A program made the position numbers and the translations under genes. From NCBI GenBank assembly GCA_002104905.1, contig MCFE01000579.1, forward strand, positions 1 to 56,523: DNA of 56,523 nucleotides. The letters run 5' to 3'. The notes beneath the pieces were generated by a model that worked only from the letters and a program-made list of their open reading frames with translations, had not been told where the DNA came from and did not search any database. This document shows, piece after piece, positions 16,340 to 23,329 of this stretch (positions are counted from its first letter, which is position 1; every line of letters starts with the position of its first letter). This DNA comes from Basidiobolus meristosporus CBS 931.73. Lineage: Eukaryota; Fungi; Basidiobolomycota.

Positions 16340-17040
16340 GGCACATCTATTGGCCAAAAAAGTATCATACAGAAAGACAGCCTGGAAGGAATATGTTCCA
16401 AGAATTGTTATCCCGAGTAGTACAGGCCTGCCACAAGAGACAGCAATCCCTCATATATGTGAAGCTGGGATTAGGGCTACATAGACAACCAAGTTACAAA
16501 GACCACTCACAGAGTTCAGTCAAGGGGTATATTGAGCAAGTATAGATCTGAGCCAGTCATATAAGCCTTGAAGCAGTGTCTGTATGGTGGGAGCAAAGGG
16601 CCATGGTAAGGATGATAGAGTTTGGAAAACGAGCAGATTTGGTAGCTCCCTGTTTTGTTCAGTGTAACACAATCATATGCCTTGGCTTTTGTGCGTCAAG
16701 ATTCTTGGATTTACCAGAAAGTCAATCACCACCGCTTCCGTCAACACGACGAATTACCTTCAAGATCTGGCATAGTGATCACATTATCCATCAGCCCAAA
16801 AAGGGGATGTTCGAGTCTGTTACAGCTGGGGTATTCTCATTAGTGCAAGTGGCCATTCCATCGACCAAATCTAAACGATCCATTGTCACATTACAAGCCT
16901 TCGCAAATAATACAAATGGTGTACCCAGATAGGCCAATCAGCATCAAGGGCGACCATGGGTTTGCTTTAAATAGGACAGCAGCCACCTGCAGGTGGGAGG
17001 CGTCACTCAATCCATCACTATTATTTCACACCGCACACAT
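16340..17040 (+). pseudogene. Degenerate Ty3/gypsy integrase relic
   Basis: Across frames it reads RIVIP, VWW..M..FVQC..C, PPLPSTRRITFKIWHSDHI, GVFSLVQVAIP, GVP and ISIKGDHGFAL. This order matches the integrase zinc finger followed by the rve core, with stops and frameshifts. Confidence 0.5.
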
Positions 17041-17048
17041 TGTTGAAA

Positions 17049-17468
17049 ATGGTCAACGTTCAAACAGTAGACGGGAACACTTTCACTGTAGATGAGGCAC
17101 TGGCAAAACATTCCCATTACTTAAAGGACCATCCCGAGGGGAAGGAGCCTATCAGGCTCACGAAGGTTAACGGTGCTACCTTTAGTAAGGTCCTGGAGTA
17201 CCTAGAGCACCACAAAGAGGACCCGGTATTCACGCTCGAAGACACTAAGCAACAGGAGTTCTCGGAATGGGACAGACAGTTCGTTCAAGTTGACCAAGAT
17301 GCTTTGTTGGAGCTACTGGAAGCTGCACAACACCTAGATATTTATCCCTTAATAGCGCTGGCTGGGAAATCACTTACAAATATACTTGATAGACCTGATT
17401 CCCATGAGCTGCATACCTCTATTGAGAACGACGCAGTCATCATTTCCCAGGGACTTGCCTTCTTTTAG
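17049..17468 (+). CDS. SKP1-like: Divergent intronless Skp1 paralog with a truncated C-terminus
   Basis: MVNVQTVDGNTFTVD, PIRLTKVNGATFSKVLEYLEHHKED and EWDRQFVQVDQDALLELLEAAQHLDI..L match the Skp1 POZ domain and helices 4-5. The ORF ends at IENDAVIISQGLAFF. Confidence 0.85.
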   Translation: MVNVQTVDGNTFTVDEALAKHSHYLKDHPEGKEPIRLTKVNGATFSKVLEYLEHHKEDPVFTLEDTKQQEFSEWDRQFVQVDQDALLELLEAAQHLDIYPLIALAGKSLTNILDRPDSHELHTSIENDAVIISQGLAFF

Positions 17469-18456
17469 TTGACAAGCATGTCCTTCGTGCGTGCTGTACC
17501 CAGTTTGCTGCCCTTGCACCTTAGTAGAGTAATAGAATGAAATGCATCCTCTCCCCCAAATCCTGTACACATAGGCTGAAGAGTGGTTGACTCAGATATT
17601 ACTCACCTTCGATAAAATTCTCCTGAAGCATCCATAAAGAACCAGCTTGAATCACTCTCTCCCAACCTTGGCTGTGTTCGGAACCCCGAGGCAGATGCAG
17701 GCAGCGGTAATTGTGCCCAGCAATCAAGGAGGACGCGTCATGCCCAGCCGTGCCTTGCAAATACTCAAAGCAATTGTGCTGCAAGCAGGGTTGTCTAGTA
17801 TGATGCCAAGCTTTTATGATTATTAGTAGATTGCAAGCAAATCAATCCGAATGCCCATTTGTCGGAGGGGACATGGGTGGCGTGATATAATCGCTACCTC
17901 GTGCCGTGGTTGAGTATGATTGTGAGGTAGAAGCTGAGCCACCATGAATTTGGTCAATATAGGTTTGATCAGCCAGTGGCTGAGAATGGGGCATGCTTGG
18001 GCTGTGGTGATTAAACCAGAGTGATCCAGCAGCTGCCCTCCAGCTTGGTAGTTGCGGCCGTCGGAGTCGAAGTCGGTCGTCGCATCACTTCACCCAACAT
18101 ATCGCTGGTCATTAGGGATTGTGGTTCATGGGTCGTGGGCTCATTGCGCCTCCTCTACGCATGGGCGGCAAGATTGTTGGCAAATAGCAGTCATGGACTA
18201 TCCACTGTCCCCCCCGAAACATTGGGAAGTCGTTCATCAGCAACCCGAATTATACACCAATATACAGGAATCACGATTGGCCGATTATTACACTGGATAC
18301 TCAGGGCGAGGTGATTGATGGGATGAGCTCATGCATACAGATCATACTCAATTCACTGACTAGTTTGGATGCCTGCGCAGTAAAGACAATCAGTCAAACC
18401 TCAATTCAACCCATATAAAAAACTCCCAGGCTGGGTGGCTTAGCCCTCGAGCACAG

Positions 18457-20888
18457 ATGAAGTGTACGCAAGGAATCTATTTAAATCGATCTTCAGGCGA
18501 CCGGGAGTTTCCATTGAATGCTATTTGCCAAACTCAATCTCTAATTACGATTATCCCTCAGGTATACTATTCTTGGTTGATCTACCTCCTAAGTGTATCC
18601 CTTTCTCAGTTAACCTTCGATTGCTCTTCCAAGGATATGCCGATGAGTGAGGTTAGATCTTTTTTTTCGCTTTCCTCCGGGGAGGCGGTCCCCCCGCAAA
18701 ACGAGACGCCCGAAAAGGTGGCTGACGAGGAGGTCGAGGTCGAGGAGAGTGCTGCGCAGGAGACCGAGGCCCAGCTTACCCCCTCTACCTCGCTGAATCT
18801 TTCAACCGACTCGGACCATTGTATACACGAGGGGAACGAAACGGTCCTCGAGGTGTTGGGCAGAGACGGCCGTTTCTCGAAGTTCCTGCAGAAAATCAAT
18901 CAACACAACAGTTTAGAGGGGGATCTTGGGGATCCAAGGGAAGAGGTTCGTTGGGTTGCTCTGCATGAGGCTGATCTTGATCGATTGGGTGACTGATTTG
19001 CTCTCATTTGTAGTGGACCATCTTTGCACCGACGGATAAAGCCTTCAGTAGACTTCACAAGAGTCACGAGAAATACTCTGACGAGCAGTTGCGTAAGGTA
19101 TGGATCAACGATTCAACGGCCTTGGGCGGCTTAAAGGAGCTTTATTGATAGGTTGGCAAATAGGTCCTACAATACCACGTTGTCCAGGAAACCTTGATGG
19201 AGGATGAATTCGAAACCAATTCCCTCATTCCGACCACGTTTGTCAGCTCTCGCCTGGACGGACATCCGCAAAGACTCTTAATCGAGTCGTACAAAAACCA
19301 CTACTACATTAATGGAGTGGCCATCAAGGAAACCGACTTGGAAGCTCGCAACGGGGTGGTCCATGTAATCAACGAGGTGATTCTTCCACCGAACCGACTT
19401 CTCAAGCAGCTGAAAGAGATCTCCAAGGAGTTCTCTATATTCCTTAAGGCGGTGGAGAAAACCGGGCTGGAAAGAGAATTTGGCGAGAGCGGAGTGACCG
19501 GCTTCATCCCCACCAATTACGCGTTTAAAAGCTTGGGTCGAAAGGTGCTGAAGCATCTATTTTCGTCTTACGGGATCGTGGAGTTGAGAAATCTCTTGCT
19601 GAACCACTTATCCACCAAACTCATCTACTCCTCCGATCTGAAGGCTCTTCTGCGTCGTGGCAACCTGGGTAGAAAGAAAGGAAGTCGTCGTAATGGCGAT
19701 TTTGATCAGCCCCCTAAAAGAGGTAGAGGTCGTAATCCACCTTCCAGACGTGGTAGACGATCAAGAGACGATGAGAGAGGAGGCAGATATCCTCCACGCC
19801 ACCGTGATGGAAGGGATTGGGATGATGAGCCAGAAAGCCGCTACCCTCACAGGCGTGGAGGACGACGCTGGGATGACGAGCCAGAGCATGGACGCCATGG
19901 AAGACGTTGGGACGATGAGCCAGTGGATCGCCATCCGCCGAGACGTGGTGGTAGACATTGGGATGATGAACCTGAAGGCAGGTTCCCACCCAGACGCGGA
20001 GGGAGACACTGGGATGATGAACCTGAAGGCAGGTTCCCACCACGACGTGGAGGAAGACGCTGGGACGATGAGCCTGAGCAGAGATTCCCACCAAGACGCG
20101 GAGGAAGACGCTGGGACGATGAGCCTGAGGAGAGATTCCCACCAAGACGCGGAGGAAGGCACTGGGATGATGAACCGGAGGAGAGATTCCCACCACGACG
20201 ACGAGGCAGACGCTGGGAGGACGAACCGGAGGAGAGATTTCCACCACGGCGCGGAGGAAGACGCTGGGAGGATGAGCCTGAAGAAAGATTCCCACCACGA
20301 CGCGGAGGAAGGCGCTGGGACGATGAGCCAGAGCAGAGATTCCCGCCAAGACGCGGAGGAAGGAACTGGGACGATGAACCTGAAGAGAGGCTACCTCCTA
20401 GACGCGGTGGGAGACGTTCGGATGATTACCATGAGCATAATGCTTCTGTGCCCGATGGCCAGGAAGGTGGTTTGGCCAATAATACTTCCGGGGGAATAAG
20501 CCACTGCAACGACTCGCGTCGTCGAAGCGATAGCTGGGATGATCTGAAGGAGGAGCTTGCTAACATCGAGAAACGCCAAGCTGGGGCTGAAACAAGAGAG
20601 GAGGAGCACTTATCTGGGCTTGGGCAAGAGTATATCGAGGAAAATGAAGAGACCATCTATGAAGTGGAGTTCCCCTCCAGGCTGTGTGGGGAGAAGTTGG
20701 AGCTTGAGGTGATCGATGATGAATATCAGGACGAGATCGAGATCACTGTTAACAAGCAAGCGCGAGTTCTCCTGGCGGACGGGGTCGTGGAAAATGGGGT
20801 CATCCACATTATTGACAGCGTGCTCTTGCCATGGGGGATTCGACTCCCGAAGTTGCAGTGGCACGATCTTCAAAAACACTCGTTTTAA
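18457..20888 (+). CDS. Fasciclin (FAS1) domain protein; second FAS1 domain interrupted by a tandem-repeat insert; N-terminus uncertain
   Basis: Exons 18457-18945, 19014-19097 and 19164-20888 join in phase 0. FAS1-1 has WTIFAPTDKAF, VLQYHVV and NGVVHVINEVILPP. FAS1-2 has GVTGFIPTNYAF and LLLNHLS, then the insert, then ADGVVENGVIHIIDSVLLP. Confidence 0.85.
19782..20417 (+). repeat. Coding tandem repeat, 51-bp/17-aa unit (WDDEPEERFPPRRGGRR), 12 W[DE]DEP copies
   Basis: Counted directly in the translation. The outermost units are degenerate and one unit is shortened. Confidence 0.97.
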
Positions 20889-21355: not shown

Positions 21356-22809
21356 ATGTTGTTCTGGTTCTTCAAAGCCGTGTACAACACCAGCAAGTTC
21401 GCCTTCATCTTTCTGACCCTGACGCTTGCTTTCGAGCTTGCCGGCAAGGAGTACGGACTGTTCTTATCCGGGTTGGAGTTTCTGCTGTTCTCCACGTTTG
21501 CGTTGTTACGGGCGGTTATCCCTTCCACGAGCGTGGTAGGTTTTTGGCACGATCACCGCTTTGTTGATGGGTTGTTTACTAATGGTGTGACAGCGTGGCG
21601 TGGTTGGCGCTGTAGAAGCCATCCTCACTCTGAGTGTAGTGACGGGAGGCCCTCGTTTGTTTGACTTCGTACAACCCTACCTATTCCTCCTCATCTCCCC
21701 TTGGCAACTGTTCCTCCAGCTGGCCTTACCTATATCGGTTCTGTTGGAGGGGCTGGCCAGCGTGATCGTGTTTTGCGAGATTGGTAAGGTCGTGAACCAC
21801 ACTGTCCAAGTACGAGAGGGGACCCAGGTAAGTACCGCTTTGTTCTCGTGTACGCTTTCAACCCCACCCTAACCACGAAACTAGCCGCTCTTCCTAGGTG
21901 GGGCGGTGGGGATCTCCGCGCTCACCTGTTTCGGGATCTACGCCATCTTGGGCTCCGCCGTTTCCAGCACCTACGGTTTCTTCATGGGGTGTTCGGTCAC
22001 CTGCGCGGTGGCGTTGTGCGCCTTCGCTATGTATTCGGAGAAGAACAGTATCGTGGACTCGGTGTTGCTCGTAAGTTCACCCACACCCCCTGACTTGGGT
22101 TATCATGATACTGACGCTGGCCACAGATCGCCTACATCACCTTCAACTTCTGGATGATCTCGAACCCTCTGAACGAGACCCCGATCCATATCGAGCAGCC
22201 CGGCCTCGACTGGAGCTATCTAAACGTTTTGAGGTAAACGAGTCTTCTCAGGGGACGCTCCCCACCTATCTTCCCCCCCCCTCCACTCCACTCGACTCAC
22301 CCGCGACCCGTGCCCAGCCTGGACTGGCAGGCGGTCATCCTCTATCTCTCGAAAATCTTTAGCAACTTGCTGGGTTTCCTGTGGTCCATCTCCGACCAGT
22401 TCATCATCTCCCTATTCTACCGGTTCGGCGTCATCTACGCCGGCATCCGAATCGTCACTCTGCTACGTCTCTCGGAGGAGACGGATCCGTTCGAGGTATG
22501 TCCTTGGCTCGCCTTTCCCCTTCCCCTTCCCCTTCCCCTTCCCCTTCCCGTTCCCCAATACCACCCACTCACCGATCATCTTCTCCCCAGTCGAACGTCT
22601 CGTTCATCGGCGTCCTCCGTCTGCTGGTCAAACCCTTGTTCGTCGCCATGTACACCTACTCCTTGATGATCCACCACGGTCACTTCACCGCTTACTCGCA
22701 GTTCTTCCAGTGGCTGAACATCCTGTGGTCGATCGGTGTCTACGTGGACGCCACCTTCCTCGCCTACGAAGACAGCCCGAGCCTGGTGGATCACTGGAAG
22801 ACGGAGTAG
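21356..22809 (+). CDS. ICE2: ER membrane protein Ice2 (about six exons)
   Basis: LAFELAGKEYGLFLSG, LALPISVLLEGLASVIVF..IG, IISLFYRFGVIYAGIRIV and LFVAMYTYSLM..FFQWLNILWSIGVY match recalled ICE2-family motifs. Exons are separated by GT-AG introns. Confidence 0.8.
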
Positions 22810-23329
22810 TCCCCCTTCCCCTCCCGGGGCCCCCTTTCAAGGTTCGCTGGACGCGCGCAGGGTCCGTGGCGAAGGGAATTCCGTGGGGAGGTTCCACTCG
22901 GTGTCCATTCCAGTCCAGATCCGCTTTCATCCCACCTCACCTCACCTCACCCCACACCATCCCATCTCATGGGTTCCCCCCCCCCCCAAATAAACCAAGT
23001 GTTCATTCTCCATCGGGTCCGGTCCACCAAAATTGCCCCGAGTCCAAGGTCAGCCAAGCGTGCGAGTGGGAGAGGGGACGACCTGGGGTTTTAGGGCCCT
23101 ACATGTTCTCCGATGTAAAGTCTACTAGCAAATAGAACGTGGGCGCGGATGTACGCCCTTCTGCGTGGATGACACCACTTCATCTCCATGCATACCAGGT
23201 GGTAAGGGTATCCCTCCGCTGGAGGGTTCAACATCGTGTGCTGTTGGTTTGTCACAAGATGTTAGGTTGCGATGGATGTTGTGGATATTTAGGGTACACC
23301 TAAATTACTCATACCTCACGGTGAAATAT

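Follow-up and report, generated by a model that had tools for sequence, protein, structure and literature searches.

Our combined findings suggest that about 320 translated residues interrupt the second of two FAS1 domains (FAS1-2) in a protein of the fungus Basidiobolus meristosporus, within the loop between strands beta2 and beta3. The break falls after the LLLNH segment, a short strand and a helical turn, and before the first long strand of the beta-wedge. FAS1-2 is split in two, its halves are predicted to assemble into a single fold, and the stretch between them contains tandem repeats whose peptide is under selection and conserved in B. ranarum. The same loop is occupied repeatedly among paralogs. 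We consider this structural and evolutionary part of our explanation very likely and the explanation as a whole likely, whereas the part that concerns function (multivalent display, binding or condensation) is put forward tentatively.

A FAS1 domain in two pieces

The window analyzed here, a stretch of 56,523 nucleotides from B. meristosporus CBS 931.73 (contig MCFE01000579.1), contains a gene that encodes a product of ~705 residues with two FAS1 domains. Its features, all on the plus strand, are as follows.

18637-18945, +: exon 1, acidic N-terminal extension, based on the open reading frame and a GTTCGT donor at 18946
~18838, +: start of FAS1-1, within exon 1
19014-19097, +: exon 2, with the FAS1-1 H1 motif WTIFAPTDKAF (Pfam Fasciclin profile positions 27-46)
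19164-20888, +: exon 3, spanning the end of FAS1-1, all of the split FAS1-2 together with the insert, and the C-terminal tail through the stop codon
19164-19391, +: C-terminal part of FAS1-1 (profile positions 57-123 of 123, E 7e-13)
19392-19673, +: N-terminal half of FAS1-2, comprising its helices, H1 strand, LLLNH segment and beta2 strand (covering profile positions 2-75 of 123)
19674-19817, +: basic linker of 48 aa, decayed proto-repeats, 18 K+R versus 7 D+E
19818-20417, +: tandem array of twelve units (17 aa each, except one of 13 aa), consensus WDDEPEERFPPRRGGRR
20418-20534, +: variable segment enriched in N, S, G and acidic residues, containing four N-x-S/T sequons, poorly conserved relative to B. 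ranarum
20535-20585, +: conserved island, WDDLKEELANIEKRQAG after SRRRSDS, predicted helical, near-identical in B. ranarum
20586-20651, +: acidic lead-in to strand beta3
20652-20831, +: C-terminal half of FAS1-2, made up of five beta strands, with the H2 motif NGVIHIIDSVLLP among them
20832-20885, +: C-terminal tail (LPKLQW...), common to the closest paralogs in the alignment

The end of exon 1 agrees with the NCBI model, the 5' end of the gene is predicted, and the introns on either side of exon 2 are 68 and 66 nt long with GT..AG ends. A hydrophobic stretch at 18563-18633 was considered as a signal anchor that would be present if unspliced, but it is more simply read as an intron of 72 nt that is rich in T and C, in agreement with the NCBI model. 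The public annotation has probably fused the window gene to a Skp1-like neighbor. The coding part of exon 3 (19164-20885, stop at 20888) is a single open frame of 574 codons, a length that would stay open by chance with a probability of ~2e-12 at the local base composition.

The exon 3 product matched the Pfam Fasciclin profile in three stretches (95.7 bits). Pfam was run on separate pieces of the exon, and on their own both halves of FAS1-2 exceeded the 22-bit gathering cut-off of PF02469: the N-terminal half, 19392-19673, with 42.4 bits (E 1e-10), and the piece 20622-20885, covering positions 77-123 of 123, with 30.8 bits (E 4e-7). No family matched the 316 aa between them (19674-20621) when scanned separately. 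Since the two pieces match profile positions 2-75 and 77-123, the split is clean, at 75/77, and the array of repeats falls within FAS1-2 and not between domains, as the initial annotation had proposed. The motif positions given there were likewise correct (H1, TGFIPTNYAF, 19500-19529; LLLNH, 19596-19610; H2, 20775-20831). In a 141-sequence alignment, the window protein retains near-invariant FAS1 columns on both sides of the insert (T36, F38, P40, A44, F45, L65, L69 and H72; D463, N468, G469, H472, V477 and P480), and the FAS1 YH dyad is NH.

Fold and motifs are the same as in canonical FAS1 domains (TGFBIp FAS1-4, 5nv6 and 2vxp; periostin, 5yjg). However, all solved FAS1 domains matched by sequence are contiguous and about 130-150 residues long, whereas FAS1-2 of the window protein is interrupted by ~320 residues, with the 316 unmatched ones at 75/77. 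Among 611 FAS1 domains from 156 relatives, 95% have a junction within ~8 residues of the median, and that of the window FAS1-2 is the largest. The tandem two-FAS1 layout is already known in fungi (PMC6032426). Neither the open-access full text searched nor that 2018 fasciclin review yielded a description of a FAS1 domain that is split or of a loop insert of more than 300 residues. FAS1 folds with insertions may be present in PDB entries 9i05_Xf/9g6k_LE and in Fsc1 (9nu9).

The repeat insert and its probable retention in the coding sequence

The insert runs from the basic linker through twelve 17-residue units and the variable stretch to one conserved short helix, which contains WDDLKEELANIEK, and the acidic lead-in. 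The array has twelve W[DE]DEP anchors at 19818-20384, compared with 0 expected from 100 shuffles, and Tandem Repeats Finder (TRF) reported a period of 51 nt with 9.3 copies at 84% identity. Higher-order periods of 102 and 153 nt are also present, and degenerate units border the array on both sides. In each 17-residue unit, acidic WDDEPEE is paired with basic RRGGRR, and the W, P, F, PP and GG positions are fixed. Charge counts (7 K+R versus 21 D+E in the acidic linker, 20418-20651) and the anchors agree with the earlier description of a basic linker, twelve repeats and an acidic linker between the FAS1-2 halves. Over its ~320 residues, the insert is an arginine-rich polyampholyte with 75 R, 5 K and 76 D+E and a net charge of ~0; R, G, P, D and E together make up 73% of it.

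Judged by codon-level variation, the insert is translated and its repeat peptide is under purifying selection. In nine core units, pN/pS is 0.10 at a pS of 0.62, and summed variation at codon positions 1, 2 and 3 is 1.6, 0.9 and 7.1. The ortholog comparison suggested by the initial annotation bore this out: in a B. ranarum contig (L001), the same units also share a reading frame with the linker and the C-terminal half. Between the two species the repeats have a pS of 0.73 and a pN/pS of 0.34, with a pN/pS of 0.12 for the C-terminal half of FAS1-2.

An insert-skipping isoform of the window gene may exist, since in two paralogs the corresponding inserts are excised from the public gene models as in-frame GT..AG introns, at the ORX96982.1 locus (L004:3270-4070, 801 nt) and the ORY00108.1 locus (L005:3165-3389, 225 nt). 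These two models, with intron lengths that are multiples of three, also favor the idea that the insert is an exitron, in-frame and coding-looking but spliced from the main mRNA so that mature FAS1-2 would be contiguous. We consider this very unlikely given the strong purifying selection on the repeat peptide (pN/pS 0.10) and the conservation of the repeats in B. ranarum although synonymous sites are saturated. Moreover, the 801-nt "intron" is itself conserved as protein, with 69% identity and a pN/pS of 0.245, and the B. ranarum ortholog of ORX96982.1, KAK9764108.1, is annotated as a single exon. In the window gene, the verified-looking introns are 66-72 nt long, there is no consensus-like donor at the edges of the insert or inside it, nor any short-intron candidate inside it, and the public NCBI model keeps the insert. 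Homology-guided gene finders are a simpler account of both removals.

Predicted fold and recurrence among paralogs

The AlphaFold2 (AF2) model supports a single canonical FAS1 domain formed by both halves. Confidence (pLDDT) is 89-98 for the N-terminal half (model residues 1-90) and 87-97 for the C-terminal strands (E421-474). With the insert trimmed, the best superposition was with TGFBIp FAS1-4 (5nv6_A 503-637; Z 20.9, rmsd 1.4 Å, 134 residues); it spans model residues 1-483 and thus both halves. Matches to single solved FAS1 domains gave Z ~20 and rmsd 1.4-1.6 Å at ~30% identity. The insert-less control, the database protein ORX96982.1, which is itself a paralog whose insert the annotators deleted, gave Z 21.7 and rmsd 1.4 Å over 135 residues with the same order of secondary structure. 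If the halves do reassemble, as they do in silico and as the initial annotation had expected, the insert leaves and re-enters the domain at neighboring points and would form a very long, flexible closed loop.

From the same model we infer that the insert is a disordered-looking surface loop. The basic linker has a pLDDT of 44-59, the repeat array has a pLDDT of 38-51 without secondary structure, and a helix is predicted in the conserved island (model residues 382-398, pLDDT ~75-80). Disorder is a prediction only, because low AF2 confidence coincides with almost no alignment depth in this region. The alternative that the 17-residue units fold as a solenoid or hairpin stack, making the insert a nested folded domain, draws on the fixed W, P, F, PP, R and GG and on two Basidiobolus proteins that lack FAS1 domains, ORX93008.1 and KAK9761898.1. 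Both keep the 17-residue spacing of these residues, with the charged residues largely replaced, and neither has a signal peptide. We regard a nested domain as very unlikely in view of the low pLDDT of the array, a composition dominated by R, G, P, D and E, and the absence of any Pfam family or Atlas look-alike (an ESM Atlas feature search with the insert gave no usable match). A word search with the insert alone matched only ORX93008.1, and Pfam found nothing meaningful in the FAS1-less repeat proteins.

The initial annotation had treated the architecture as one it did not recognize. It does recur: long inserts sit in this loop in five or more B. meristosporus paralogs, in the corresponding B. 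ranarum proteins and in a small number of unrelated FAS1 proteins. In the paralogs, arginine-rich mixed-charge inserts of 75-316 residues occupy the same beta2-beta3 loop. The nearest paralog, ORY08246.1 (tree support 100/99), has an insert of ~95 residues; those at the ORX96982.1 locus and in its ortholog KAK9764108.1 are about 267 and 265 residues long, and ORX95456.1 and the ORY00108.1 locus have about 82 and 75 residues. All of these have the architecture, loop and type of charged insert of the window gene. However, their sequences differ, with for example DDDDYGRGRR-type units, and none has the 17-residue WDDEP...RRGGRR array. ORX96982.1 and ORY00108.1 were considered as natural short-loop paralogs, but reading their loci ruled this out, as the inserts had been annotated away. 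In unrelated FAS1 proteins the same loop accommodates widely differing inserts, among them some rich in Thr/Ser or in Cys, and chytrid relatives have inserts at the next hairpin. Such inserts are a family habit in Basidiobolus, one that gene annotators handle inconsistently.

Possible roles of the loop

The arrangement could provide multivalent display of one short motif on a disordered loop that would be electrostatically self-complementary. Such a loop could bind one partner many times, or it could cause self-association or condensation, in the manner of arginine-rich mixed-charge regions. The insert resembles these regions in being long, of low complexity and nearly balanced in charge, with R over K and a blocky pattern, features reported in studies of mixed-charge regions to drive cohesion and condensation. 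The mixed-charge domain criteria of Greig et al. (10.1101/771592) are a charged-residue fraction (FCR) of 0.7 and a positive-to-negative ratio of 1:0.7 to 1:1.3 with R over K. With 80 positive and 76 negative residues, and 75 R versus 5 K, the charge ratio of the insert falls within this range; its FCR of 0.49 (0.54 for the repeats, at most 0.62 in any 60-aa window) lies below the threshold, and we do not class it as a strict arginine-enriched mixed-charge domain. It also differs from such domains in being rich in P, G and W and nested in a folded, usually extracellular domain. Plant fasciclin-like arabinogalactan proteins (FLAs) likewise combine FAS1 with long disordered regions, but their disordered glycomotif regions lie between or beside FAS1 domains and not within one (PMC10152678), and the window insert, unlike FLAs, has no AP/SP/TP glycomodules.

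No signal peptide was detected in the window gene, in either our own or the NCBI model, or in the nearest paralogs and orthologs. In a crude test on the predicted 5' end, the most hydrophobic 10-residue stretch among the first 35 aa of the window model had a Kyte-Doolittle mean of 0.91, compared with 2.1 or more in signal-peptide-bearing relatives. Of the initial annotation's folded adhesion scaffold with a long disordered loop, the fold and the disordered-looking loop stand as predictions, and adhesion was an assumption.

The failure to find a signal peptide also weakens a reading in which the insert is a Kex2-processed peptide precursor within a secreted FAS1 protein, cleavage at RR freeing WDDEPEERFPP-type peptides and leaving a two-chain FAS1 domain. 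The insert offers 27 dibasic (K/R)R sites, two RR per unit, in tandem near-identical short repeats such as those of KEPs (PMC6339444, PMC7329392). Most two-FAS1 relatives carry a signal peptide, the start of one charged-insert paralog in B. meristosporus resembles a signal peptide, and the window protein has seven N-x-S/T sequons. Nonetheless, the first feature that defines KEPs (PMC6339444), a signal peptide, was not found in either model or in the closest paralogs and orthologs, nor in the other carriers of the repeat unit. The RR pairs sit in the conserved RRGGRR block and not in spacers between variable cores, and the inserts that paralogs have in this loop are not built as arrays of repeats and cleavage sites. 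The window array also lies inside a folded domain instead of following a pro-region. As no signal peptide was detected, we do not count the window protein as a KEP, despite its internal repeats and KR/RR sites, and we consider a Kex2 precursor very unlikely. A similarly slim chance is given to the insert being a tolerated, functionless expansion by replication slippage in a permissive loop. The diversity of inserts accepted there, including the Thr/Ser-rich and Cys-rich ones, the decayed edges of the array and the 102- and 153-nt periods, which point to unit duplications, fit such an origin. Against it, the peptide is kept (pN/pS 0.10) in units near synonymous saturation (pS 0.62), and two species have conserved both the unit and the helix downstream of it.

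A bolder extension of the proposed loop function is that a two-FAS1 protein that is normally secreted has become an intracellular scaffold in Basidiobolus, one lacking a signal peptide, with the beta2-beta3 hairpin of FAS1-2 as an evolvable display site and the loop driving multivalent binding or condensates. Each paralog would then loop out a different arginine-rich mixed-charge region anchored at both ends, in the window gene twelve copies of a W-acidic/FPPR/RGG-like motif common to other Basidiobolus proteins. We regard this as speculative and rather unlikely; if true, the FAS1 fold would have been put to a new use, and a condensate-type sequence would be presented as a natural closed loop.

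The inserts also pose an annotation problem, since in one genome they are kept in two or three models and cut as an in-frame intron in two, errors that carry over into domain censuses and secretome surveys covering early-diverging fungi. The 17-residue unit in FAS1-less proteins hints at a motif specific to the genus. The hairpin that follows the (Y)H motif is a permissive hot spot of the FAS1 fold, carrying more than 300 residues with the predicted core undisturbed. Because the inserts are conserved and selected, and recur within a single genus in five or more paralogs, they likely matter for the function of these fungal FAS1 proteins.

The split FAS1-2 domain and its gene model

Exons of the two-FAS1 gene were modelled by reading the DNA directly and by mapping the 841-aa NCBI protein K493DRAFT_411366, part of which is 100% identical to the exon-3 product, back onto the window. 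The two introns between the exons are 68 and 66 nt long, both GT..AG. The pieces of exon 3 were submitted separately to a Pfam scan.

Exons of the FAS1 gene (DNA reading plus protein mapping) and Pfam results for the pieces of exon 3.
18637-18945, + strand, exon 1
19014-19097, + strand, exon 2
19164-20885, + strand, exon 3, stop at 20888
19164-19391, + strand, end of FAS1-1 (Fasciclin profile positions 57-123, E 7e-13)
19392-19673, + strand, FAS1-2 N-terminal half (Fasciclin profile positions 2-75, E 1e-10)
19674-20621, + strand, insert of 316 aa (no Pfam match)
20622-20885, + strand, FAS1-2 C-terminal half (Fasciclin profile positions 77-123, E 4e-7)

The FAS1-2 halves are thus exact complements on the Fasciclin profile, which bears out the initial annotation of a domain split in its middle by a repeat insert. 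Its layout of a basic linker, twelve repeats and an acidic linker was also accurate, as judged from linker composition and from 12 W[DE]DEP anchors, versus 0 expected from shuffles. The array has a period of 51 nt, with 11 units of 17 aa and one of 13 aa, and decayed units at both edges. Two further frames of the array lack stops, one in sense (19657-20499, + strand, 280 aa) and one antisense (19714-20349, - strand, 211 aa); they result from the codons that make up the repeat and can mislead gene callers.

In the NCBI model, a Skp1_POZ exon (17049-17303), taken from a complete 142-aa ORF (17040-17468), is linked to the FAS1 gene across introns of 1078 and 33 nt. The other introns of the gene measure 66-72 nt, unlike these two in the upstream region (17040-18636). 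Since a Skp1_POZ-type N-terminus was found in no paralog, the fusion is probably chimeric. Downstream of the gene, at ~22310-22810, runs of PLPLPLPLP and SPSPSPSPS in the ORF translations point to a CT-rich short simple repeat.

Coding status of the insert and its repeat unit

The probability of an open frame arising by chance is ~4e-7 for the 316 insert codons and ~2e-12 for all 574 codons of exon 3. Among nine core units, pS is 0.62 (near saturation) and pN 0.064 (pN/pS 0.10), with summed variation at codon positions 1, 2 and 3 of 1.6, 0.9 and 7.1. The ortholog comparison that had been proposed as a check came out in favor of a coding insert: in KAK9686416.1, an ortholog fragment from B. ranarum, the array units share a frame with the acidic linker and the C-terminal FAS1 half. 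Between B. meristosporus and B. ranarum, pS is 0.73-0.96; pN/pS is lowest in the FAS1 half (0.12) and reaches 0.34 in the repeats and 0.42 in the linker. Scanning the insert for splice signals revealed no consensus-like donor and no short-intron candidate. Together, these findings argue strongly, if indirectly, that the insert peptide is translated and under selection. An additional isoform that skips the insert may exist. On the B. ranarum contig (JASJQH010008835.1:1-728), the contig edge falls within the repeat array; the annotated start of KAK9686416.1 is in the wrong (+1) frame of the repeats, and the correct frame runs open from that edge onward.

The repeat unit follows the pattern W-x3-P-x3-FPPR-x-GG-x2 with 17-residue spacing. 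Two further Basidiobolus proteins, ORX93008.1 and KAK9761898.1, carry 6-8 units of this pattern and have neither a FAS1 domain nor a signal peptide. Many charged residues of the unit are replaced by G or F in these proteins, suggesting that fixed aromatic, proline and glycine positions, beyond charge alone, define it. No similar unit was found outside Basidiobolus in the relative search, the word search or Atlas, and the 17-residue unit looks like a genus-specific repeat family.

Predicted fold and possible role of the loop

The domain was modelled with AlphaFold2 from an alignment of the window FAS1-2 domain and 140 FAS1 domains.

Segments of the AlphaFold2 model of FAS1-2.
Residues 1-90, N-terminal half, pLDDT 89-98
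Residues ~100-380, insert, pLDDT 38-51, without secondary structure
Residues 382-398, helix, pLDDT ~75-80
Residues 421-480, C-terminal half, pLDDT 87-97

The helix coincides with the sole linker island that is near-identical in B. ranarum. With the low-confidence stretch trimmed beforehand, model residues 1-483 superposed on single FAS1 domains in VIA-align. The best match was TGFBIp FAS1-4 (5nv6_A 503-637; Z 20.9, rmsd 1.4 Å, 134 residues, 30% identity). As a stand-in for the insert-deleted window sequence we used a paralog FAS1-2 minus its insert (ORX96982.1:172-347). Its model (mean pLDDT 93.2) has the same order of secondary-structure elements and the same best match, 5nv6_A (Z 21.7, rmsd 1.4 Å, 135 residues). 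The insert sits in the loop that joins the first long wedge strand to the short strand and helical turn following LLLNH. The two halves are therefore predicted to fold together, as initially expected, and the proposed folded scaffold with a long disordered loop is largely supported in silico, the fold being predicted and the insert having low pLDDT. Our combined findings support a canonical FAS1 core with a long loop that is translated, conserved and predicted to be poorly ordered. The fold search also returned a Toxoplasma mitoribosomal FAS1 protein (PDB 9i05_Xf / 9g6k_LE; ~300 chain residues for ~160 aligned) and S. pombe Fsc1 (PDB 9nu9; ~225-240 for ~140-146), both of which may represent solved FAS1 structures that carry insertions.

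Because both loop ends are anchored at the hairpin, the insert would form a closed flexible lasso, displaying twelve copies of one short motif. It consists of 24% R and 24% D+E, with a net charge of ~0 and alternating acidic and basic blocks. In R content, balanced charge and block alternation it resembles arginine-enriched mixed-charge domains, which give cohesive multivalent contacts (10.1101/771592; PMC9324279). However, these domains need an FCR, a measure of charge density, of 0.7 (10.1101/771592), whereas that of the insert is at most 0.62. Based on the anchored lasso and on this likeness, multivalent partner binding and/or electrostatic self-association ranks as the most likely role, a tentative assignment.

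Charged inserts among relatives

The entire split domain, used as query in an exhaustive profile-free search, yielded 1359 relatives, of which 156 proteins were surveyed by pairing matches to the N- and C-terminal halves. Of the resulting 611 junctions, 95% were within ~8 residues of the median and that of the window gene was the longest (+339).

Other long junctions.
KAK9764108.1, B. ranarum, +270
ORY08246.1, B. meristosporus, +92
ORX95456.1, B. meristosporus, +82

Further outliers were two environmental proteins with Thr/Ser-rich inserts and one with a Cys-rich insert. Two apparent short-loop paralogs were rejected as such, their loci holding in-frame inserts annotated as introns.

In-frame "introns" at the FAS1-2 loop of B. 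meristosporus paralogs.
L004:3270-4070 (locus on MCFE01000142.1), ORX96982.1 gene, 801 nt, exactly at the loop, R/G/D/Y-rich
L005:3165-3389 (locus on MCFE01000087.1), ORY00108.1 gene (L005:2408-3616), 225 nt, charged, R/G/D-rich, DDDDYGRG-type

The ORX96982.1 gene is a single uninterrupted 614-codon ORF, and its 801-nt segment shares 69% aa identity (pS 0.73, pN/pS 0.245) with the insert of its single-exon B. ranarum ortholog, KAK9764108.1. From the junction outliers and these reread loci, Arg-rich mixed-charge inserts at this loop, 75-316 residues long, are thus present in at least five B. meristosporus paralogs. A second hot spot for insertions is the following beta hairpin of FAS1-2, which holds R/D-rich inserts of 45-85 residues in chytrid two-FAS1 relatives with signal peptides (Irineochytrium KAJ3194420.1, Borealophlyctis KAJ3281880.1 and a third protein, P0121).

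Most two-FAS1 relatives start with an obvious signal peptide. By hydropathy of the first 35 aa of the gene models, none was found in the window gene, ORY08246.1, ORX96982.1 or KAK9764108.1, with highest 10-residue means of 0.6-0.9 versus 2.1-3.5 in signal-peptide relatives; no upstream in-frame ATG was found at the two loci checked. At the ORY00108.1 locus, the ORF reaches an ATG 93 nt upstream of the annotated partial start, followed by a signal-peptide-like segment. Charged inserts therefore appear in secreted-looking and non-secreted-looking paralogs alike. Kex2-processed repeat proteins are recognized by repeats, RR sites and a signal peptide (PMC6339444); the window array has the first two, but no signal peptide was found for the protein by hydropathy.

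In a tree built without insert columns, ORY08246.1 comes out as sister to the window gene and KAK9764108.1 groups with the ORX96982.1 locus, each at 100/99; the four proteins without a signal peptide cluster only weakly (80/44). Full-text searches of open-access papers found no published account of such a split FAS1 architecture. The initial view of a singular architecture did not hold, given like inserts at this loop in the B. meristosporus paralogs; the split FAS1-2 is a lineage-wide variant of FAS1 architecture rather than a singular oddity.
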